The notes beneath the pieces are model-generated. The model had not been told where the DNA came from. It worked only from the letters and a program-made list of their open reading frames with translations, and made no database searches. Shown here piece after piece: positions 9,801-46,886 of a DNA stretch of 64,000 bases (its first letter is position 1; each line of letters starts with the position of its first letter). The DNA comes from Podarcis bocagei (taxonomy: Eukaryota): assembly GCA_964188305.1 (NCBI GenBank), contig OZ076894.1, one strand, 5' to 3'. A program made the position numbers and the translations under genes.

Positions 9801-12077
9801 CTGAAGAGCTGGAGGTGGCCAGGCGTCAGAGGGCCAGTTGCAGGAGGAGGAAGGGCTGCTCTTGAGCCCGGATCCTGCTTGTGGGTTTCCCACGGCATCT
9901 GGCTGGTCACTGGGAGAGCAGGAGGCTGGACTAAGGGAGCCCTGGGCCTGATCCTGGGGCTCCCTGGCACTGCAGGGGCAGTGGATTTTGATGGGGGCAC
10001 AATGGGGCAGAAGCAGACTCTGCAGGGCCTGTGGGGAGCTTGGACCATATCCCAGAAACGACTGCAAGGCTGGGGCAGCCCCACAGGGCCCCGACCCACG
10101 GAGCTGACAGCCGCAAAGGGCTACCAGCCCCATTGGCTGTCTTCTGCCTCTGAACACCAGATACAGGGGCAGACGATGAGGCTGCCCCCAAGTCCGGCTT
10201 AGAGACACTCTGGGCCCTTGCCTAGATGGCCACCTGTCTTGCATGCTCTAGCCGAGATTCCTGCATTGCAGGGGGTTGACCTAGATGACCCCTGAGGTCC
10301 ACTCCAACTCCCAATTCTATGATTCAGTGTTCTTGACACTGACATTTCATACATTCATAGAGTTGGGTGGCACAAGAAGAGTCTGGCTGCTGGACCACCT
10401 AGTCCATCATCGTGCTCTCGCAATGGCCAGCCGGATGCTGGTGGGCTGGGTTCAGCAGGGTGCCCTGGGGGCTGCCAGAGGTCTTGGGTGCTGGAGAAGT
10501 CCCAAGGGAGCTGGCAAGGGCTCCCATGCCTGCCTGCCCGCCTGCCCCAAACAAGTTCTTGAGGGAAGCGGAGGCAAGCGTTTCTGGCAGATGTGATATG
10601 AAGGATGCCTGCAAAGAATGACAGGCCGCCACAGCCTGTCTCCTCCTGCCGGAGATTCTCAGGAGGACAGAGTCCCTGCAGTGGCAGGCCCCCCCCCCCC
10701 CAGCATGGCACGAGAACGGAGGCTGCGTCTTTGGCCCTGCCCCTCCCTCACTTTAGTCCTGGGACTCTGAGTCAGCCAATGACTCCCACTGCCTTGAAGC
10801 TTGGGAGGGATGCCAGGATGCCCCCCCCCCCAGCCCTGGGCACCAATCTATCTATGGTGCCCCTTGCTTCAGTGGGTGTTAAGGAGGGTAGGTAACCATG
10901 TTGGTCTGACGCAGTCAAAATAAATTTAAAAAATTAAAGAATTGTCCAGTTGCACCTTAGAGACCAACTCAGTTTGTTCTGGGTCTAAGTCTTCTACTAC
11001 CTGAAGAAGTGTGCATGCACACAGAAGCTTCTATCCAGAATAAACCGAGTTGGTCTCTAAGGTGCTACTGGACCATTTGTTAAGGAGGGGTTAGAGGAGG
11101 GCTGTGAGCCAGGATGGTGAAAGGGCCTCCATGCCCAGGGAGAGGCGGGTGTCTCTGCCAGTTCCTTGCCGGGGGCAGAGGGGGGCTGAGCTCTGGCTTC
11201 CATAGAATCAGAGTCCTAGAGGGCTCTTGCTCCCAGCCCTGGCTGTTTGGCACAAGGAAGACATCTTCCACAGAAGTCTAGAATCCTAGACTTGCAGAGT
11301 TGGAAGGGACCCCTGAGGGTCTTCTAGACCAGCCCCCCGCAAGCATCCCTGGCAGACGGCCTCCCAATCTCTGCTTAAAAACCTCCAAGGAAGGAGAAAC
11401 CGGCAGCCTCTGCTCCTTGGAGCCTTTTCTCTGGGTCCCCCCCCCCCGTTTCCATTGACCTTCGGAGGCTGTTTCGGGGGTGGGGGGGGGTCTGGCTGGC
11501 TGGCTGTGCAGAGCCTCCCTGGCAGGACTGGGCCTTCTTCCTCTCCCTGCCTGCCTGCCTGCCCGCCGGCTCCTTCTGGCCTCCTGCCTGTGTGCTTCAC
11601 ACAAGGCCTCAGTGCTAATTGGGATTGACGGGTCTGTCTCTGCCGCTGCGGCGACGGGTGAGACATGCCAGGGTCGGCGGAGGCAGGCGGGCTCCCATTG
11701 GCAGCCTCCCCAGGCTCCTGCCAGCTGACCTGCCTCCTCTGCACCAGCTCCCACGGCCCCCCAGGAGGGATGGGGGCAGCCCAGCCAGACCCCCATCTCT
11801 GCCCCCAATCACTAGCGTTGGCTGAGTGGGGTTCCTTGGGAGACGCCTCCCTCTGACTTGCTCCCCGCCTCCCCACAGCGTGGAACATGATTTCCGGAAG
11901 CAGGAGGGGCGTTTGCAGCAGGTGCTGAGCACCATTGAGCCTGAGATGAGCCACAGCCCCCCGGGGGCCACGCGAGCTGCCACGCCGAGCCACCAGGAGC
12001 CGTCGCCAGCGCTGAATCTGCCCGTGGTGAAAGCGGAGCCCAAGAAGTCCCGGCGAAAGTGTTTCTGGTTCCTGTGA
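6897..12077 (+). CDS. INSYN2/FAM196-family protein (inhibitory synaptic factor 2-like), 3 coding exons, ~483 aa
   Basis: Exons 6897-8074, 9250-9324 and 11879-12077, all GT-AG with phases 2/2. Kozak GCCATGG. N-terminal VRSVLLKRDS...QQVRFKD and C-terminal LQSLEGVLETSQRTIKVLLDVIQDLEKKEAQRDG|RQSYRTGQDTTNCGTCRDCACIIYS|VEHDFRKQEGRL...CFWFL match the FAM196 conserved blocks. AATAAA at 12326-12331. Confidence 0.85.
10889..11077 (-). mobile_element. Older Penelope-like copy with inverted 5' part and degenerate hammerhead, 12-bp TSD
   Basis: TSD TGTTAAGGAGGG at 10877-10888 and 11078-11089. Imperfect inverted arms. CTGAAGAAGTGTGCATGCACAC from 11001, with a mutated GAAA box. Confidence 0.75.
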
Positions 12078-31240: not shown

Positions 31241-34200
31241 CTACAAAATCTGGTTATTGAGCTGTCCTGGGTACTGTTCAAAGCGCCTGTTTGCCTCCTC
31301 ACTGAGAGCATCACCTGCAGCAGAAGGACCAGAGGAGGGCATGAGGAAGAGGAGGGGACCCCCAGCAAGCCCCCCCCAAAAAAAACCCTTGGAAAGTACC
31401 TATATGGCAGCTGTGCACCCAGATGCGATGGCCGTCATACTTGCAGTTGCACTTCATGGCGTTGTTGGTGAAGTCGCTCTCCGCCACTTCGTACCGGGGG
31501 TTAATCACCACCTGGAGGAAGGGAGGGAGGCTGAAGGGAGCCCTGCGCCCCACGGGCTGATGGGAAGAAATGGCACCCATCCTGGGGGGCAGGGAGTGCT
31601 CTGAGAGCTGGACGTCAAAGCCCTGAGGAAGGGCTGGAGCGGGGAGCAAGGCAGAAGCTCCACAGGTGCGGCGCCCACTGCCATGCCTGCCCCACTGATT
31701 TCAACAGGGCCTGATTTGGTGCCCAGCTTTGGACGGCTTTTTGCTCGCTGCCAGGTCAGTGTCTATAGAGTTGCAGCCACAGGGCTGGATCAGGCCCTAT
31801 TTACAACAAACTAGGCAGGAAGTGGGATAGAGAGGGAATCGCTTCCTGCCTCTCATAAGACCAGGCTTGGCAGGGACTCACTTAATAGAAATGGAGAGTT
31901 GGAAGGCCCCCCTGTGTGTGTCTCCTCTGGGAGGGAATTCTGTGACGCAATCCCTTGCCCTCCCTGTCCACCATGCTCTCAAGCAATCATGTGCCTGGGT
32001 GCTCCAGACAAACACACCCTGTTCTGAGACTACCAACCTTAAAAGTGTTGCTATGCTTCTACTTTCCTGTATTTGCTGCCTGCATTGAAATGTAAGTAAA
32101 CAATTTTTGTATGTTTGTCTTACTAAAACGTGTGGTACCTTTTCTGCAGCAGGTAGAGAGGAAGGTCAGTGAACCTCAAATAAAGGTATAAAAAGGTATA
32201 ACTGCCTCATTCCTAAAATTCAGGAAGCTGCAAAATGACTTAAGTGTGTTTACTTTGCCAAAAAGGCTTCACAGCCCACCTCAATTCATCTGCCGAAGGG
32301 ACTCTCAGGGCCATATAGTCCAACTCCTGCAGTGCAGGAACCGCAGCTATAGCATCCCTGACAGTTGCCATTCACACAACCTGCAGTTCACCTGCGGAGT
32401 TTGCTGCCCCTCCCCTCCCTCTTCTGGTCTCACCTGCAGGATGTAGTTGCCAGCCTTGACGTCGGTGATGTCTATCCACTGGCAGTCAATGTCGTGGCGA
32501 TAGAGGTCCCAGCAGCCCACCGTGATGCCCTGCTCCCCAAAGTTGGCACATTCATAGCGCTTGCTCACGTCTGTCCAAAGAAGGGGAGGGGGGGTCAAGT
32601 CCTGCCAGGGGGCAGCAAACTCCTCCCTGAACCCCTGGGAAGCTGCTGCCAGTCAGTGTAGGCAACCCTGAGCTCATTGGACTCCTTTAGATCCCATTCC
32701 TATCTGGGCTTCTGAGCCTCAAAGGCAGCCACTGCCCCCTGCTCCCCCCCCCCATGGCCACAGGCACCCTGGCAGCTTCACCCACCCTCGTGGCATTCAG
32801 TGTCCTCCAGGCAGAAGCTGGCCTTGTGTCCCTCTGCGACTTTGGTGCCATTGGAAGTCAGGAGGTCATAGTGGGTGAAGACGTCCATGCTGTGGTAGTG
32901 CCTGGGGTGAGACATGGCGGTGTTGTGCAGTGGTTAGAGCATTGGACAAGGAGAGACCAGGGTCCATGAAGCTCCCTGGGCAACTAGCCTACCTTGCAGG
33001 GTGTTGGGAGTATTTAAATGAAGAGGGCAGAGAGAGAAGCATGCCTTCGCCACCTTTAGTTCCTTGGGGGGAAAGGTGGGATATAAACACAACAGAATAA
33101 AAAGAGCGAGAGACCCAGCCCTGAGCCCAGAGGAGGGTGAGTGCTCACCCGTGACATTCGTGCCAGACCCAGGAGTGGCGCCCTGCCTTGGGGCGAAAGT
33201 CGGCCCGGCCGTTGTTGTGGATCTGCGAGGAGAAGCGCAGGAGGCGGCGGTGGCCGTAGGGCCAGTTGGCATTGCGGGCGCTGCTGGACAGGCAGTTCTC
33301 CTCCGCAGCGCAGTAGAGCATGTGCAGAGGGCGGTCCTCAATGTACGCCGTCTCTTGTACCAGGGGGGCATGCAGCAGCAAGTCCGAGGCAGCTGTGAAG
33401 AGAGAAGGGGAGGGGGCCGGGCCCAGCAGCTGTGGGGCTAGCCCAAGGCATAGGGCCACCTGAAGAGCCCGCCTCTGCTGTGGGGCTGGCCCCTCTGCCT
33501 CTCAGTGACCCCAGTGAAGGTGGGAGGGCATGTCTCTCAAAGGAGCCCCTTCCTCCCCTGACCCCCAACTGGCTTCCAGGTGGGCTTGCTCCCAGGAGCA
33601 GGCCCAGGGGTCTCCTTCTGCCCCCCAGCAGTCCCTCCCCTGCCTCACTTTCTGAGCAGATGACTCCAGCGGCGAATCGGGTGCCCGTCTTGGGGCAGTT
33701 GAGGGTGCTGTGGTGCTGGCAGTGGCTGAGCGCCATCTCGTGCCCGCCACACTTCACTCCGCTCAGCACCATCTCCGTCACGTTGCTGGCATCCCAGTAC
33801 CACGTTTCCTGGGGACAGAGCACAAGAGGCAGGGCAGTGGGGCACCTTCGCCCCTCTCTGTGGCCAGCACAAGCAGAGGCACCAAACAGAAGGGTCTCAG
33901 AAGGGCCCTCCAAGGGCCATCTAGTCCGGCCCCCTGAAATGCAGGAATCGCAACTAAAGCCTCTGGGACAGGGGGCCACCCAGCCTCTGCTACCAACCTC
34001 CTGAGGGAGTCTGTTGTGCTGGTTCCCAAATCCTGTTCCTGCAGTGTCCAACCAGAGGCCAGAGCACCAGATCCAATGGACTCTCCTGCCTTGTTGGAGC
34101 AGAGCAGGTGGCCATCTGCCAGGGCTGCTTCAGCTGCCATACCTGCATTGCAGAGGGTCAGACTAGATGGCCTCTGGCATCCTCCCAACTCCACAGTTCT

Positions 34201-37200
34201 CTTGGCTAGTAGTAGCCCCCCCCTTCTTCTCCACTGGGCCTCTTCTCCTTCACCCAGCTGCCCTCCCAGGAAACCCCTCCCCCTGACTGCCTCCTTCCCA
34301 GCCCCACGGCTGCCCCACACCTACCGTCACGGCATGCATGGCGTAGCCCAGGCCGAGTTGGCGACAGGCCACCATGGCCTCGGTGGTGCTCCAGCCGGTG
34401 CTGCAGACGGTGCCCCAGCGGCCGGCGTGCTTCACCTCCACGCGCCCCTCAAACGCCGTTCGCCCCCCGGCGATGCGGATCTGTGGGGAAGCCCAGCGAT
34501 GAGCTGGCGGCTGTCCCTCCCCATCCTGGCTGGCTACCCCTTCCCACCAGCCAAGGCCAGGAAGGCAGTGGCCGCCCTCAGCCCCAGCCGAGTGGGGGGC
34601 ACGTCATCGTGGCCTCAAGGGTTCCCCAGCCCTGGCGCAAACCAAGCCCCTCCCCCACAGGGGCACTGGGGGTTGCCAGCCCCAATCTGCATAGGGGGAG
34701 TTGTGGGCTGGGAAAAGCCTGCAGGCAGCCTAGTGAAGTTCCCCGTCCTTTGGGAGGAGCTGCTGCTGCTGCTGCTACTACTTGGGGGTGGAGAGAGGAC
34801 AAGGCCCCTCTTCCCTGGGGCCCCCAGTGCTGACCGTGGTTTCGTGGCCCATGTAGGGGACGTTGCAGCGGGCGGCCGCGTCCTCTGTGTGCTTGCAGTC
34901 CTCCTGCGTGATGTTCTTGTGGGGGCAGCTCCAGAGGGACTTCTCAGTGCCCAGGCAGCGCACCTCGTTCAGGTGGATCTGGCCCATTCCTGTGGCAGGA
35001 GAGGAAACGCTGGGCCTCTGGGAATGGCCAGCTGAGAGCCCCTTTTGGGGGGCAGTCTATGGGGAAGGTGGTGGTGGGAGTCAGAGACGGCCTGTGCCCC
35101 CTTTCGTCATCCCAAGCCACCACCCACATTTCCTTTGCCAGGCTAGTCTTTTCTGTAGAAGTATACTTGTTTCCAAAGTGAGCACATCTCTGCCGGTGGG
35201 GGCGCATGCAGAGTGGGGGGACCCCCCATGAACATGGGGTGCCAGGCCTTTCTGGCACCTGTGGCAGTCCAGACGGCTGTGGGGTGTGTGTGGAGGGACT
35301 GTTGGACTGTGGGGCACCCCTGAAGGAGCAGCCCAGGCCCCCCCCCAGCGGCTCACCTTGGCCCATGCGTGCCCCCGTCAGAGCCTCCTTGGCGCTCCCA
35401 AAGCCAAGCTCCCGGCACACAACACTGGCGGATGCCAGGCTCCACCGGTCATCGCAGACGGTGCCCCACTCGCCGTTCTTCAGCACCTCGACCCGCCCCT
35501 CGCCGGGCTTGGCCCCTCCCTTCAGCCGTACGCGCTGCTGTGGGGAGCAAAGGGCAGTTGAGACGCCCAGGAGGTGGTGCCCTGAGGCTGCCCCACTCCA
35601 CAGTCCTCAGAGGTAGTGCAGTGCAGTGGTTTGAGAGCTGGGACCTGGGAGAGACTCCACCACCCTGGAGCTCAGGGGCCGATCTTTGGGCAGCTGCCAT
35701 CTCTCAGCCTGACCTGCCTCCCAGGCTTGTTGCAGGACAAAATGGGAAGAGGTGCCAACTTGCGCTCCATTTGGAGGAAAGGAGGGATGTTGAGGTCATA
35801 ATAAACAGCTGTGTCCTGCGTTCCAGGGGGTTGGACTAGACGACCCTTGGGGGTCCCTTCCAATTCCACAATTCTAGGATTCTGTGAAATCGCTGGCAGG
35901 CTGGGCAAGTGCCCCCTGCTCCCTCCTTCCTCGCTCACCTGCCCCGCCTGCTGCCGCTGCCTCTTCTTCTTCTGGGCGTTCCCGGTGGCAAACAGCGGCC
36001 CAGGGACGCAGCTGACCACGGCCGGCATCCCCGCCCTGCAGACGCCCGTGGCGTTGCCCTTGTAGAACTCGAAGGAGCAGAGGGAGAGGTGCACCTCCGT
36101 CCCCAGGCAGGCCACCGAGTGCAGGCGGTAGTTGAGCGGCTGCCGCTCCAGGGAGAGCCTGCAGGGAATAGGAGGGGGTCAGAGGGCAGGGCTGGAAGGA
36201 GCACACAGGTGGGGCACCTGTGGGGCAGCCGTGCATCATAGCATCTGCCCCCCCCACTGTCCCCTGCACTCCCATACCAAGCAGGGCCCTCGGCTTCTCT
36301 GGACCTGGAATGACGGCTGCAGAGGAGCCTCTGGCAGCCGGGTGCCAGTCCTGCCCTCAGACTCCCAGGGACTCACAAGGCCCCATTACCTCTTGGTGCC
36401 CCTAAAGTCCTCCCTGCGTCTATGTTTGGGGCGAGACCTGGAGACCGGCCTGGAAGACAGACAGACAAGGTGAGGGACGGAGCCCACCATGCACCCCTCC
36501 CTCCCTGGGGCCGGATCCTTGCAAACTCTCTGCTCATTTGCACTGCTCCGGGATGGATCAGGCCGCACAGGCCAGCCCAGGCTTGTCAGAAGCAAGCCTG
36601 GCATCCACTCCCCCAGGACTCATGCCAGCAGCCCCAGCCCCACGCAGAGAAGCCATGCAGCCCCACACCGGCAGTCAAGCATTGCAGGGAGGAGGTCTCT
36701 TCCAGCTCTGCAGTTCTGTGGCTCAATGTCTCATTTCTGCCTTGGGACTCTGAAGAACAGGAGAATGCCCCCTCCCGCCCTCGCTGGGCATCCAAAGCCT
36801 CCCTCTAGCCCACCCCACTGTGCCCCACAGCACCACGCAAAGTGCTGTGAGAAACCTCAAAGCTGATTGCAGTCCCCATTTTCTCCCCAGCAGCTGGCAC
36901 ATGTAGGATGGTAGAGTGCTTCTGTAAAAGGAGGCTCCATTTAGCCAGGAGGGATCCTAGCTCAGCAGCAGAGGACATGGTGCTATGAATGCAGAAGAGC
37001 CCAGGATACCCCCCCCCCAAAAAAAATCTCTCGCACACACTCAAAATAAGAAAATTCCTTCCAGTAGCACCTTAAAGACCAACTAAGTTAGTTCTTGGTA
37101 TATACCAAGAACTAACTTAGTTGGTCTTTAAGGTGCTACTGGAAGGAATTTTCTTATTTTGACTATGGCAGACCAACACGGCTACCTATCTGTAACTGGA

Positions 37201-40200
37201 ACACACTCAAAAGGCTGGGAAAGATCTTTTTCCCACCTGGTGGGACCTTTGGGGAGTCATAACAGAGAGCTCAGGACCGGATGGGCCAGGGAATGAGGCA
37301 GGGCAAACCCACTTCCTCTGGCCTTCAGGAATTTGCCTAATTCCCTTCTAAAGAGGCCCCCGTCTGACTTGTGGCAGCGGATTCCAGGTTCTGCAATGAA
37401 GAACTGCCTTTTTGCCCACTGGAACTCTCCCAACATTGGATCACTTCCTGAGTCCTGGAATTATGAAAGAGAGAGGAGCCCCCCCCCCAAAAAAGAAGCA
37501 TTTTCTGAGTGCTTTTATAAACCTTCCTCCTATACCTCCTTTTGCCCTCAGGCTGAGCTGAAGAGCCTCCCAGAATTTGCCCTTTTAGGGAAGACTCAGA
37601 GAGGAAACTGATGATGCCACACAGTGGACCCAGGTTACACGGTGCCTGTGTTGCGGTGGGACCTGGGTGCTCAGCTCCCTTGCAGCCCACCTTTGCTTGC
37701 CTGCCGGCAAAGACGCCTCTTTCTTCCCAGCTGAAGGCACACAGAGGTGCCCTCAGCCCAGCAGTGAGTCACCGCTCAGACATCCCTGGACCAGACAGAG
37801 CACACACTGGCGCCTTTGTCCAAAGTCCTCCGCGGCCAGACGCCCATTCACATGGCTCAGGTGCTGCCCCACTCTCCTCTCCCCCCGCCCTGCCCGCTCC
37901 TTTCCTCGGAAACATTCCGGCGTCTTCCCGTGCCATTGACACACCAGCTCCCCAGGCCAAGTCAGGGTGATGGAGACGGGCAAGGATCCATCGCAAGGCC
38001 AGAGGGCTTCTCTCCTGTCTGTCTGTCAAATGACCCTCAGGTCCCTTCCAACTCTATAATGCTATGATTCCAACTCTGCATAGCGGGGGGGGGGGGCTCC
38101 AAAGGGTCCTATCAAGACAAATGCCGCCCCCCCAACTCTCCATGTTCCTCAGTGCCAGCCCCCGTCCGCACAGCAGAAATGGCTCAGCTCCAGGGCAGCC
38201 CAAGGCCACGAGACACTCATGCCCCTGGCAAGACAAGAAACGTCATCCGCCCCTGGGGAACGCCCCAGAGAGAGGTGCTGCCCCACTGAGAGGCAGAGGA
38301 GGCAGAAAGCAGAGAGCTCAGCCCTCCAGCAGCGCCTCTGAGTCCCTGGTGAACCTCCTGCCCTCAAACCTGGAGGGGAAGCATTGCGGCGGAAAGGGGT
38401 GCTCGGTTTGGGGAGGAGGTTCACCACCTCCCCTTCTGGATCCACAGCCAGTGAATCCGGACTGAGCAGGACAGCATGGCCCCCTGTCAGGTGGGGGGTG
38501 GGGCAGGACTCAGGGGCGGGGGGCCAGGGTCCGCCTGCTGCACAGAAGCAGGGGCCTCCTGGCTCCGTTACCTCTTCCGGGGGCCTGGCTTCCTCCGGCC
38601 CTTGGCAGCTCGCTTGGCCCGCCTGCGGGAGGAAAGTCAACAGGGCCTCTTCAGGAAGACAGGCGAGGGGCCAGGCGGGGGGGGGAGCCCCCAGGGCAAC
38701 ATCTGGCCAAGTTGGTCCCCAATCTTCCCGTTCTCTAGCTGCAAGAGCTGGAGGTGCTTCCACTGAGCAGCTTCCCACCTCCCACCCAGACACCCTCCCC
38801 AAATCTAACCATCTGAATTCAAAGCAGCTTAGCTGGCAAGACAGGAAGGTCCAAGGCAAGACAGCAACTCCTCCAAAGACCCTGGCTCCTTGCAAGGCAA
38901 GATAGACATTGCTAGGCGGGAGCTGTAGGATAGCTCAGCTCCAGGGTGGTGATGTCATTTACAGCAGTCCAAACCTATACATTTTGGTGCCCAGAACTGG
39001 ACATGGGACTCCAGGTGGAGGCTGACCAAGACAGACTAGAGCAGACTCTGACTTCCCTTGATCAGGACACTAGACTTCTGTTGATGCAGCCTAGAATTGC
39101 ATTAGCCTTTTTTGCTGCTGCATCACACTGTGGACTCATGTCAAGCTTGTGATCGAAGAAGACCCTGTGATCCTTTTCACATGACCTGCCGTCAAGTCAG
39201 GTGTCCCCCATTCTATATACAAAGCTGGTTATCCCTGCCTAAGTGTAGAAACTGAAATTTGTCCCTATTAAAATCCATTTTGCCAGTTTTAGCCCAGTTT
39301 CCCAATCTGTTAAAGGTCATCTTGAATCCAGATTCTGACCCCTGTGTCATTTGTGACACCTCCCAGTTTGGTGTAATCCTTGACAGGAATTTGCACTCAG
39401 GGGGGCAGAGCCTTAAAGGGGTCTTGACACATGGCTATGATGATGACGACAGTATCCAAGACTTAAGTGCAGAGAGCCCAGAGGTCCTCTCCTGATTTCC
39501 CAACAGATGACCGCAGTGCCTGGAGACAGACAGTGAGGTCATGCTGCTATAGCAGTGACCAGAGGAGGAATGACCACTGGTAGGAGCGCAGAGAGAAGAA
39601 ATGCCATGGTGCGACTGACCACCTTTCTCTGCCCCAGCTGCAACAAAACATGTCTCTCCCCTATCGGTCTCTCCAGTCACAGCTGGAACTCTTCAACAGC
39701 CTGGCTTCACCCCCAAAGACACCCTCCTCCATTGTCTCCAGAGACAGACAATGTTAACCAGCAATTTCCCAGCATGTGATCAGTCCATTCCCCCTCCCCC
39801 ATGGAGGTCAGTGGCAAGACTGTCCTCCAAGGGTCTGAATGGGGGGGCATCTCGGTTCTCCCCCCTCCACGCAGTCACTCACTTGTAGAAATTGCGGTTG
39901 ACCTTCTTCTCAGCAGGGAAGCCCAGCATCCCACAGATGACGCGGCTGTTGCGGCTGCTCCAGTTCTCATCACAGATCTGTGCCCAGCTGCCCCGGTGGC
40001 GGACTTCCACAATGCCCTCTGCCACGGGCAGGGGCCGCTTGGCGTGGGAGACCACGGGGCGCAGGCGCAGCTCCTCCACCTGGTTCTGCTCTGTCTGGAG
40101 GGAGGGAGGGAGGGTCAGCCCCCGGCAGAGACCTCTGCCCCACTGCATGGCCTGGCAGGGGACTGGGTTCCATCCCGAGAAAGGATGCTTGAGTTGTGAT

Positions 40201-42929
40201 TCCCACATTGCTGGGGGTTGGGAGAGGGTTGCAAGGAGGAGGAGTTGGAGGCTGGAAGGTGGGACCTGTCTGGTGGGAGCCTGTTGGGAAAACAACTTTT
40301 AACACCGCACCCCAACACACACAGAAAACCAGCAGGGTCTCCAAAGTGGGGGGAGGAGGAGGAAGAGGGCAGAGACTCTTTTGCTGAGAGGAAGGAGGCG
40401 GCTGGGGCTCGGGTGGAACCTCCTGCTGTTGAGAAAAGAATCCCTGGACCCAAAAATGCAGCCACAGGGGTGTGGGGCCTGCTTAATAGAAAGCAGCATG
40501 GCTTTGCTGTGGCCAAGTGACGCCAGGCGGCCCCCACTTTCCCCTCGAGTGACGAGTCACAGAACGGAATGCTGTGGGTGTAAAACGCCTCTGGCCTCCT
40601 GCCCAGCTGGTTGGTGCCCCAGTTCCAGGGCTGACGTCACCCCCGCCAGCTGGAGACGGGAGGCCGTCAGGGCGGTGTGAGGAGGAAGCCCTGAGCAGAG
40701 GAAGGAAGAGCCAAGGGGGTCTGTGTGGAGTGAGGGGTCTGTTGTAGCTTCCCAGGAGGACTTCCTGACTGGGGCCTGGCCTGCTGGGAAATGCTTGCAG
40801 GGAAGCCCAAAACTGGGGGTGGGGAAGAGTTCACCCACCTCAAAATTCTCCAGAATATAATATGGGCAAACTGGCAATGGAAAAATGGAAGGAATGTGGC
40901 CCCAAAGCAGCCCTGCCAGGTCTCCCAGGGACACCTCAGGCTAGGCCCCCTCTTGCCCCCCACTCCTTCCCCGCTTCCACAGTGACCCCCTTACACCCGC
41001 AGGGCTAGATCCCAGACTGTGCTAACAGTGACGTTAAAGCCCCACATAGGAATGCGCCTGGAAAAGTCTGTGCGCTGGAGCCACGAGACATTTTTCCTGG
41101 AAAATCACCCTCCAACTGAACATTTGCTCTCCCTTCGTGGAGGAAACGCGTCCCAGCCATCTGGCCACAGGCAGCTGCAAGAGGAACATCTGGCCAGAGC
41201 TGCCTTGCTCTCGCTTACTCTTTCCTACTCTTTTTCGCCTGCCATAGATGCATAAACACCCACACCTGGGCAGCCCATGAAGCTGAGGTTGGAAGATTCA
41301 GGGTAGCTGAATCCTTCCTCAAGAGGGACTGAGCCCCAGGCAACAGGCCCAGGCACGAAGGCAGGGCTGGCCCAGCTGGGGGCCCTTCTTCCTTCCTTCC
41401 ACCCCCCCCCCCGCCTGGGCCTCCTCCAGTCTCTTTCAGGGAACATCCTGTGCTCTTCCAAGCCTTCCACGTCTGACTAATGCAGCCTTGTTGGGACCCA
41501 CATGCTTAGGGAGCAGTTGTCTGCAGCAGGAATGGGGATCCCCCTAGCTCCCACTGCCTCTGCTGCCACAGGCACAGCAGCCCTGCCAGCCTCCCCCCCC
41601 CCACTGCCCCCAAGCAAACATCTCCCCACCCACCTCAATCACATTGGAGTCCACAAAGCCAGGGATGCGCTCGTCTTTGCAGATGACACCGGCGTCTTCT
41701 TCATGGGAGCAGTCGCTGTTGCCCCAGCCCCTCGACCGGCAGTCCGTGATGCTCTTCTCACTGCCCCCACAGTTCACGTTGTCCAGCCAGATGCGCCCTG
41801 CAAAGCCATAGCCAGGAGGANNNNNNNNNNNNNNNNNNNNNNNNNNNNNNNNNNNNNNNNNNNNNNNNNNNNNNNNNNNNNNNNNNNNNNNNNNNNNNNN
41901 NNNNNNNNNNNNNNNNNNNNNNNNNNNNNNNNNNNNNNNNNNNNNNNNNNNNNNNNNNNNTGAGAGCGACTCTAGCCAGAGACTTTTCCTTAGTCAATCT
42001 TGGATGCCTGCTCCTTAGGACTGGCTGTGCTTACCCAGCAAAGAGGAGAAATGCTCTCTGCATATGCTTAAATGCAAAATCTTTTAGTATTCTCCTTCAC
42101 TGGTTCTGCAAGATTGTGGCCTAGAAAGCTGTGGAAAGCGAGGAGCCAGTGTGGTTTTGTGGTTAGAGTGTCAAACCAGGAGAGACCAGGGTTCAAGTCT
42201 CCATTTGCCCATAAAGCGCACTGGGTGACCATGGGCCAGTCCATGCCTTTCAGCCTTACCCACCTCACAGGGTTGTTGTGCAGATTAAATGAGGAGTGGG
42301 AGAAGCACGTGGTCCACTGTGCGCTCCTTATTTAAGTGCAATAAACAATTAGATAATATTATGTATTTAAACAATCTGTGGCCTTTTAAACTGCATGGCG
42401 TGTTTGTTACTATGTTATGTATTTTGTGATTTTTATATTGTGAAGCACCCTGGGGTCTTCTAGAAATTTAATAAATTCAAATGTGCAGCCTGGATCAGAT
42501 CAAGGCTGCAGCTTATGAGTGTCTCCTCTTCTCAAGGACAAAACAGTGCAGGGGCTGCCCCGCCCCCGCCCCCGCCCTGCCCCATCCCAGCGCCCCTTGC
42601 CCCGGCCCTCGCTGCTCACCGATGCCTTTGCCATACTTGGCGCTGTGAGTCCAGCCGGTGGCGGCCACAAAGCCCAAGTGGCGGCAGAGAACGTGGGCGT
42701 TGGCCAGAGTGAAGTCGTCGTCGCAAATGGTGCCCCACTCCTGGCCGTAGAAGACCTCGATGCGCCCCTCGTTGTGCTTGCGGGGGTAGCCAGCCAGCCG
42801 GAACTGCAGCTTGGGGCGAGCCGGGGTGCTCTGCACTGTGGGTGCCGCTGGGGTGCTCTGCTGGGCGGCGCCCACCCCCAGCCAGACACCACACAGCAGC
42901 CCAAGCACCTCCCACAGGGCAAGACCCAT
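31241..42929 (-). CDS. LOXL3: Lysyl oxidase homolog 3 (4 SRCR + LOX domain)
   Basis: Exons 42620-42929, 41634-41797, 39883-40094, [38572-38622, 36390-36449 optional], 35939-36158, 35357-35537, 34835-34989, 34325-34480, 33649-33808, 33149-33392, 32786-32901, 32434-32570, 31400-31511 and 31241-31314. Signal peptide, WGTICDD SRCR motifs, Cu-binding [11 protein letters not shown] and [19 protein letters not shown]. Lies between HTRA2 and DOK1 as in mammals. Confidence 0.95.
37041..37200 (+). mobile_element. Penelope-like element copy forming a perfect 122-bp palindrome, 12-bp TSD
   Basis: 37041-37101 is the exact reverse complement of 37102-37162. TSD ACACACTCAAAA at 37035-37046 and 37201-37212. 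Confidence 0.85.
38940..39380 (-). repeat. CR1 ORF2 fragment
   Basis: ttctgttgatgcagcctagaattgcattagccttttttgctgctgcatcacactg is typical CR1 RT-region sequence. Confidence 0.7.
39490..39760 (+). repeat. RTE-type LINE 3' remnant
   Basis: Encodes a [20 protein letters not shown]2H2-like C-terminus typical of RTE elements. Confidence 0.5.
41821..41960. other. Assembly gap (140 N) in a LOXL3 intron
   Basis: Run of N. Confidence 1.
42135..42335 (+). repeat. tRNA-derived (MIR/CORE-like) SINE
   Basis: A-box/B-box-like gtggttagagtg...gggttcaagtc followed by cctcacagggttgttg. Related copies at about 4600-4820 (-), 32920-33100 and 35615-35800. Confidence 0.6.
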
Positions 42930-45580: not shown

Positions 45581-46350
45581 AAATAAAAATTCCATACTCC
45601 AGATGCCTCTCAGCTGAGAGGCCCTGGGCTTCAGCAGAAACCCCCTTCCCATGCCAGCCCCCCTCAGCCACGCAGCTGCTGCAGGAGCTCTGCCCGCCTC
45701 CTCTGGGCTCCAAGGGCAGGAGAGGCTTTGGCCCCGCCCTGCTGGGATCCTAAGCTGGATGCCAGGCCTTCTTGAGGGCCCAGGTCAGGCCGTTGTCTGC
45801 GCTGGGAGGGTCAGTCCCCGGCGGCATTTGCGTTCCCTCCTCTAAAGCATCCATGATGGCATGGAAAGGGAACAAGAGCCCTGTGGCTGCTGCTGCTGAA
45901 TCACCCCAAAGGGGACCCCGCTCGTCCAGCCTCCTGGCTGCCCCCCCCCATTGCCAGCCAGATGCCCATCCTGGGAAACCCGCCCGCGAGTCCAGAGCGC
46001 GACAGACCCCACTCCTCTCCTGCGGCTTCCCCGCCCGGGCCGACTCCGCATTGCGACCGAGCAGCTCTTCGGGGCTCCAGGACAGACCTGCAGCGCGGGG
46101 CTCCTCCCGCCCACGGACACGCGCTCCCACCCGAGACCTACGAGCTCCGGAGTCACGAAGCGAAAGTTTCGACGACGTTTCTGACGTCGCAGCCAACCCC
46201 CCGCCCCGGGGGACTTGCCACCACGCTTCAAAATACAAACGCGCTTCTTTCTTCTGCGTCGGTTGGGGATTATTTTTCCCTTTAAGGTGGCCTCTCGCCT
46301 GAATGTCCGTTCTAGAAAGCGGACTGTTTTCTCAAACTAGTTTTGGTCCC

Positions 46351-46479
46351 TGTGTATCTGAAGAAGTGTGCATGCACACGAAAGCTCATACCAAGAACTA
46401 ACTTAGTTGGTCTTTAAGGTGCTACAGGAAGGAATTTTTTTATTTTGACTATGGCAGACCAACACGCCTACCTATCTGT
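46351..46479 (+). mobile_element. Short Penelope-like retroelement copy with minimal hammerhead ribozyme, 16-bp TSD
   Basis: AACTAGTTTTGGTCCC at 46335-46350 and 46480-46495 flanks a ~130-bp insert homologous to 37102-37200 and 10889-11077. Confidence 0.8.
46354..46391 (+). ncRNA. Minimal type I hammerhead ribozyme
   Basis: GUAU-CUGAAGA-A-GUGUG CAUG CACAC-GAAA-GC-UC/AUAC. Stem I is GUAU/AUAC, both catalytic boxes are present, stem II is perfect, and stem III is the palindromic AGCU. Confidence 0.75.
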
Positions 46480-46886
46480 AACTAGTTTTGGTCCCGTCGA
46501 ACTTTTGATGTTTCTGGTCTTGTAACGTCCCAAACGCAGAGGCAAACTTTGAATCGCGAAACCAGTTCGCTTCGAAGCTTTCCTTGCCGGTGGCCACGCC
46601 GTCCGGGATGAGGCCCCCGAGCAGAGAAAGGGCCCGCCGGGCTGGCCGTCCTTCGAGGCTGCTTCCGGCCAGAGGGCGGCCCGAGCGCGGCCGCCTGCCC
46701 CCTCCGGCCCGCCCCTTCGAGGCAGGGCTGAGCCAGGCCAGCGCCCCCATCCCTGGCCTGGGGGCGGAGCCGCCCCTCCCCGCCCGGCGGCTTCCGCTCC
46801 CTCGGCGAAGCCCCTCCCCGCGCCGAGAGGCGGCGGCGGCGCTGACAGATCCGGAGCGGCTGGGCTGCCCGCGGCGACTCTTCCGG

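Follow-up and report, generated by a model that had tools for sequence, protein, structure and literature searches.

The stretch analysed here, a 64,000-nucleotide window of the Podarcis bocagei genome (contig OZ076894.1 of assembly GCA_964188305.1), includes part of a gene of the lysyl-oxidase-like (LOXL) type on the minus strand. The Lysyl_oxidase domain is found in three pieces in exons at 31311-33459, and exons encoding SRCR domains lie at 33338-35486 and 39879-40295. A short insert, the subject of this work, has such exons on both sides and therefore falls within an intron of the gene; the intronic location proposed in an earlier sequence-only reading of the stretch holds at the level of the gene family. 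The insert is 154 bp long in total, is bordered on either side by a 12-bp target-site duplication (TSD) and contains a perfect palindrome of 122 bp (37041-37162). It is a 5′-truncated copy of a short non-autonomous element, a putative derivative of a Penelope-like element (PLE). The features of the insert and of its relatives in the window are collected in Table 1.

Direct reading, a repeat search and a script agree that 37102-37162, read as its reverse complement, reproduces 37041-37101 without a mismatch, with 61 nt facing 61 nt and no spacer between them. It is impossible for a perfect inverted match of 61 nt to have originated by chance within 64 kb. The TSD is the 12-mer ACACACTCAAAA, present at 37035-37046 and repeated at 37201-37212; the last six nucleotides of the left copy, TCAAAA, double as the outer six nucleotides of the palindrome. 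The forward arm extends beyond the palindrome to 37200 and is 97% identical to a sibling copy in the window from 46388 onwards, its first base being the base that directly follows GAAAGCTC in the sibling. When positions in the element are numbered from ATACC = 1, the forward arm comprises positions 1-99 and the inverted arm positions 61-1, and by script TCAAAA (37041-46) is the reverse complement of positions 56-61. The spacer-less palindrome inside a TSD-flanked insert was thus correctly described in the sequence-only reading, and the microhomology that it noticed between TCAAAA and the TSD is real and exact. Both focal arms carry C at element position 52 (places 37050 and 37153), where T makes up about 95-99% of the family depth and C about 1-5%; sharing this rare variant, the arms come from one template or from one minor subfamily. 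The fold of the palindrome in single-stranded DNA has an energy of -67.7 kcal/mol, and the pre-mRNA of the lysyl-oxidase-like gene would hold a perfect hairpin of 61 bp.

Table 1. Coordinates of the focal insert and of related copies in the 64-kb window
Feature	Positions	Strand	Basis
Left TSD copy, ACACACTCAAAA	37035-37046	.	Direct reading, repeat search, script; in two species, an empty-site joint 37034 to 37201 with 12 ambiguous letters
Inverted arm, element positions 61 to 1, outer end TCAAAA	37041-37101	-	Reverse complement of 37102-37162; organism A contig from left flank to 37066
Forward (primary) arm, element positions 1-99, from predicted cut site to family 3′ end, no poly(A)	37102-37200	+	97% identity to sibling from 46388
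Right TSD copy, 12 bp	37201-37212	.	Repeat search, script, contigs
Sibling copy, about one full unit, 16-bp TSD (46335-46350 and 46480-46495)	46351-46479	+	Sequence reading, copy comparison
Minimal hammerhead motif of sibling	46358-46387	+	Sequence reading; fits the description in PMC4209133
Older composite, primary arm; full 3′ end adjoins left TSD (10877-10888), 5′ end within about 8 nt of predicted cut	10889-10994	-	Copy comparison, script
Older composite, inverted arm; starts about 7 nt upstream of CTGAAGA, includes hammerhead core, ends internally at right TSD (11078-11089)	10995-11077	+	Copy comparison, script

Contigs of three DNA runs and the raw RNA reads of one run were aligned to positions 36500-37700. 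In organisms E (a 1816-nt contig) and F (a 1505-nt contig), 37034 is joined straight to 37201, so that 166 nt are skipped, with 12 ambiguous letters at the joint. These joints are the empty target site, holding one copy of ACACACTCAAAA, and with them the TSD-flanked retro-insertion postulated from sequence is borne out in two related species. Organism A is the best holder of the stretch; the run used for it comes from another study than the top run. Here a 1248-nt contig runs from the left flank (from 36500) into 26 nt of the inverted arm, ending at 37066, and an 890-nt contig leads from 37177 across into the right flank. The focal copy is a young, lineage-specific retro-insertion.

The element belongs to a very abundant family. 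Summed contig depth over the insert is about 5 × 10^5 to 2 × 10^6, compared with 8-30 on the single-copy flanks, which points to roughly 10^4-10^5 copy equivalents, a figure that is based on depth and is not an exact copy number. Besides the focal copy, the window holds the sibling (46351-46479) and an older composite (10889-11077), which makes three copies in all. Their TSDs measure 12, 12 and 16 bp, and none of the three has a poly(A) tail. Variable TSDs, absence of poly(A) and frequent 5′ truncation are the marks of PLE insertions, and all are matched by the window copies. No PLE sequence occurs within the 64-kb window, the 26-nt core of the element has no exact match in metagenome contigs or viral contigs, and none of four motifs of the element (9-15 nt) is present in the supplement on PAc, a Poseidon PLE of the anole. 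Contigs of three species place family 3′ ends, with random flanks, at 37196/7 and 37200/1. The two end points, 4 nt apart, possibly represent two adjacent start sites of reverse transcription; an anole PLE is reported to have two such adjacent sites, there 30-40 nt apart. The element also contains a small internal palindrome at positions 9-21.

The 5′ end (TGTGTATCTG...) and the 3′ end (...CCTATCTGT) of the sibling have TATCTG in common, and in the older composite CTGAAGA is preceded by CTACTAC, similar to the family 3′ end CTACCTAT. Together these resemblances suggest a template longer than one unit, whether a tandem, a terminal repeat or a circle. No tandem repeat organisation is seen among the three window copies, all of which are dispersed single units. 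In the RNA of organism F, about 90 reads per arm leave the element at position 50/51 (37051 and 37152) and enter one common sequence with about 0.7 agreement, as might be expected of one well-expressed variant copy or subfamily in that organism. Runs of 10-12 C followed by runs of A stand at 37003-37026 and 10824-10835, 9 bp and about 40 bp upstream of the two inverted insertions. A similar C/A tract is found at 37474-37497, 471 bp downstream of the first, and the focal TSD itself starts with (AC)3. The tracts may reflect the reported preference of PLEs for low-complexity targets, or they may be near the insertions by chance.

The hammerhead motif is read in the sibling, where CTGAAGA (46358-64) is followed by a bulged A (46365), helix II (46366-79), GAAA (46380-83) and GCTC (46384-87). 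CTGAAGA and GAAA correspond to the core CUGANGA ... GAAA. Helix II consists of 6 bp (GTGTGC/GCACAC), and the minimum free energy (MFE) fold of the monomer retains both this stem and helix I. The latter, GTAT/ATAC, has 4 bp in the sibling and 3 bp when the family 3′-end sequence is placed upstream; in the older copy it does not pair. The same 30 nt upstream of position 1 form the consensus of the family contigs and of 258 RNA reads. Such an arrangement resembles the minimal hammerhead ribozymes (min-HHRs) of metazoan PLEs, which consist of the core only, with a large helix II that has a bulged 5′ base and no helix III in cis, and which are thought to act as dimers; in vitro their cleavage is poor and confined to dimers (Cervera and de la Pena 2014, PMC4209133). 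Shared with them are CUGANGA and GAAA, a 6-bp helix II with a bulge, the lack of a cis helix III and a palindromic AGCU that could, on paper, form helix III between two copies. In the sibling this AGCT (46383-86) is self-complementary, with C directly after it; when two copies are cofolded without constraints, it is instead the helix II strands that pair between the molecules. The motif, known here from sequence, differs from the published min-HHRs in a helix I of only 3-4 bp and in the lack of an Rfam hammerhead match. None of the models RF00163, RF00008 and RF02275-7 reaches its gathering score over the whole window, and none matches at E<=10 on 46250-46550, 46340-46420 or 10950-11100. Sub-threshold Rfam matches were taken for chance, and matches of microRNA-precursor models to the older composite were attributed to its hairpin shape only.

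Canonical numbering puts the predicted cut of this motif after GCTC, between 46387 and 46388 in the sibling. The cut site had been placed there in the sequence-only reading, correctly for a motif of this kind, and the focal insert does begin at the first base of the predicted 3′ product. The focal hinge, at which the two arms meet, coincides to the base with the canonical predicted cut site.

The reading that best accounts for the locus is that PLE machinery inserted a short min-HHR element by priming from both target strands, which left a head-to-head duplication of its 5′ part; its probability is put at roughly 0.7. Staggered cuts 12 bp apart, to which the TSD and the empty site testify, opened the target. 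The minus-strand 3′ end between 37200 and 37201 may then have primed a cDNA from the usual 3′ end of the family. On the plus strand the 3′ end reads TCAAAA and complements element positions 56-61 exactly, so that it could pair with the RNA already in use, or with another from its subfamily, and prime a second cDNA. Both cDNAs would have stopped at element position 1 and then been linked by these ends, the simplest means being a template jump from the 3′ end of one to that of the other. Such a join would yield a palindrome without a spacer. Two cDNAs with the same stop imply that at position 1 the template either ended, with a defined 5′ terminus, or presented a strong stop. Since position 1 is the predicted hammerhead cut, a ribozyme-processed template would be the leading candidate for the cause of that stop.

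The older composite has an inverted arm as well. Its arms are identical at 40 of 45 positions, and the inverted arm holds the hammerhead and about 45 nt that are absent from the primary arm. On account of this extra sequence it is not a fold-back copy of the primary cDNA, and to judge from the alignment its layout would need two separately primed cDNAs, one per target strand, that were then joined. Dual-strand priming explains both loci. The snap-back second-strand step that the sequence-only reading had invoked is unneeded at the focal locus and fails at 10889-11077. A suitable activity is known: in vitro, the protein of an anole PLE cuts both strands of the target and extends both (Frangieh et al. 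2024, PMC11167929).

An adjacent inverted, 5′-truncated copy is thus present in two of the three window copies, and such copies are a stated hallmark of PLEs (PMC8557442). The family contigs contain 42 further joints between arms besides the hinge at position 1, of which 15 are listed; these 42 belong to other copies of the family, whose arms meet in inverted orientation at many different positions. Among those listed, given as left/right element positions, are 30/12, found in all three species, 32/15, 28/6 and 36/53, as well as the nearly loopless 19/19 (with AGT between the arms), 19/20 and 18/19. Several other joints of the family are deeper than the hinge at position 1. The recurrent joint 30/12, in which the inverted arm starts from 30 and the forward arm from 12 with a 3-nt microhomology, occurs at 2-7x single-copy depth in the three species and looks like either a hot spot or an amplified composite.

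Several observations weigh against priming from both strands at the focal locus. On one short RNA it requires the same 61 nt to be copied twice. The family has fold-backs with almost no loop at element positions 18-20, besides about 40 further inverted joints, and these indicate that another turn-around mechanism may exist, one that would produce symmetric hinges at any stop. None of the listed contigs of organism A bridges the hinge; contigs from short-read graphs are, however, expected to break in a perfect palindrome, so that an unbridged hinge is not evidence against the palindrome itself.

A refinement of dual-strand priming, possible although the odds are against it, holds that the template RNA had already cleaved itself at the hammerhead in vivo, which would make the hinge a genomic record of cleavage. 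To the base, the hinge is where the canonical cut is predicted, after GAAAGCTC, and if the cDNAs were primed separately both halted there. In the older composite the primary arm stops no more than about 8 nt from this site. Organism E, which lacks the focal insertion, has a hinge of the same type at other loci: a 56-nt contig, about four times as deep as single-copy sequence, covers 37073-37129 with one gap and not a single substitution. Against this stand the RNA reads of organism F, of which 258 + 134 pass uncut across the site into the hammerhead sequence with no excess of read starts or ends anywhere; the run is from a species without the focal insertion, and ordinary RNA-seq is a weak detector of cleaved ends. 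The family joints that are listed show no peak at position 1. The short helix I and the failure of every Rfam hammerhead model at E<=10 do not favour an active ribozyme, nor does the feeble, dimer-dependent cleavage of min-HHRs in vitro (PMC4209133). In the anole PLE no RNA ends are seen at the corresponding site, and ribozyme mutants insert normally in vitro (PMC11167929). The claim of a self-cleavage record rests on one positional coincidence. What stands of the ribozyme-cleaved template proposed in the sequence-only reading is that the insert starts at the base predicted for the 3′ product; as a record of cleavage in vivo, it is opposed by the uncut RNA reads, by the joints at other positions and by the lack of an Rfam match.

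Snap-back of a single cDNA is an unlikely origin of the focal palindrome. The cDNA would have stopped at position 1 for whatever reason, folded back, copied itself to position 61 and been joined to the target through TCAAAA. A symmetric hinge would come automatically, the rare C at position 52 would be expected in both arms, and the family does contain fold-back joints with loops of 0-3 nt, e.g., 19/19 with AGT between the arms and 18/19. However, a hairpin without a loop cannot template its first bases, and a perfect centre would need lucky untemplated additions. The inverted arm of the older composite, with its sequence absent from the primary arm, is left unexplained, and for this reason snap-back was rejected as a general mechanism and kept as an alternative for the focal copy.

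Two further explanations of the hinge are both improbable. Reverse transcriptase could have stalled at the foot of a folded, uncleaved ribozyme, either at helix I or at the AGCU helix between two copies, in which case the hinge would mark the structure of the ribozyme and not its chemistry. Helix I begins with position 1, which also adjoins the AGCU dimer helix, helices I and II are present in the monomer MFE fold, and the RNA of organism F is overwhelmingly uncut; the helices are short and weak, however, and reverse transcription ran through the motif uninterrupted both in the sibling and in the older composite's inverted arm. Alternatively, the palindrome could have been inherited from a transcribed copy that was already palindromic, its left end being an ordinary 5′ truncation joined by microhomology. 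The roughly four copies with a hinge of the same type in organism E fit such a source, as does the minor-subfamily variant common to both arms, but reverse transcription would have had to pass through a perfect RNA hairpin of 61 bp, and the origin of the hinge would merely be moved one step back. Weakest of all, and largely refuted, is the notion of an assembly artefact, a worry voiced in the sequence-only reading, or of two independent neighbouring insertions: no listed contig of the insertion-bearing species spans the hinge, so that the centre itself lacks an independent bridging contig, but a single 12-bp TSD surrounds both arms, exactly the whole insert is absent from the empty site (166 nt skipped), the arms are identical at 61 of 61 positions with a rare variant in common, and the left flank adjoins the inverted arm in an independent run, which sets both aside.

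The role of the hammerhead in PLEs and in animal retrozymes is the question that the focal hinge addresses. The function of the PLE hammerhead was called unclear by Craig et al. 2021 (PMC8557442), and Frangieh et al. 2024 (PMC11167929) found cleavage to be dispensable in vitro and no cleaved RNA ends. It is a tentative and rather doubtful proposition that RNAs processed by the hammerhead do serve in vivo as templates when Penelope-type elements retrotranspose, and that spacer-less palindromes arise when cDNAs primed from the two target strands both run off at the 5′ end left by the ribozyme and are then joined. If it is true, genomes hold a countable record of ribozyme cleavage, and the PLE hammerhead has its first demonstrated role. 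A pile-up of family 5′ ends and hinges at the predicted cut would give a first trace, in vivo, of templates processed by the ribozyme and would also tie the dual-strand priming seen in vitro to inverted genomic scars. Taken alone, the focal locus is a single case, if a well-documented one, of an insertion architecture that is already known.

Twin priming of LINE-1, in the account given by Ostertag and Kazazian in 2001, reportedly leaves an inversion with little or no duplicated sequence. As proposed here for the focal copy, microhomology lets the second target strand pair with an internal part of the RNA, from which it primes an inverted 5′ segment within a single TSD. The focal copy differs in that 55-61 nt are present in both orientations. 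Another parallel is PAc, a lizard PLE whose open reading frame starts inside a hammerhead and whose cleavage and extension of both strands would give head-to-head copies (PMC11167929). No role for cleavage by the ribozyme emerged from that study, nor were RNA ends seen at the cut site; inverted genomic junctions lay outside its analysis.

Short hammerhead-bearing elements derived from PLE terminal repeats are on record from vertebrates, reptiles among them (Cervera and de la Pena 2020, PMC7229834; bioRxiv 10.64898/2026.07.22.740005). These non-LTR retrozymes resemble the present family in being short (about 100-400 nt) and non-autonomous, in carrying type I hammerheads, in their relation to PLE terminal repeats and in their presence in reptiles. 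They are defined by tandem arrays and circular RNAs, whereas the window holds three dispersed single units. PLEs' inverted copies (Evgen'ev and Arkhipova 2005; Craig et al. 2021, PMC8557442) have the same build as the focal insertion, a 5′-truncated insert with an adjacent inverted, 5′-truncated copy, along with variable TSDs, a lack of poly(A) and, in the terminal region, a hammerhead motif. The present element is a non-coding derivative of roughly 100-145 nt, and its spacer-less arms meet exactly at the predicted cut, a coincidence not described in the cited PLE papers. The focal copy is a further example of this known architecture, a PLE-type insertion with an inverted 5′ copy, contributed by a short element that bears a min-HHR.

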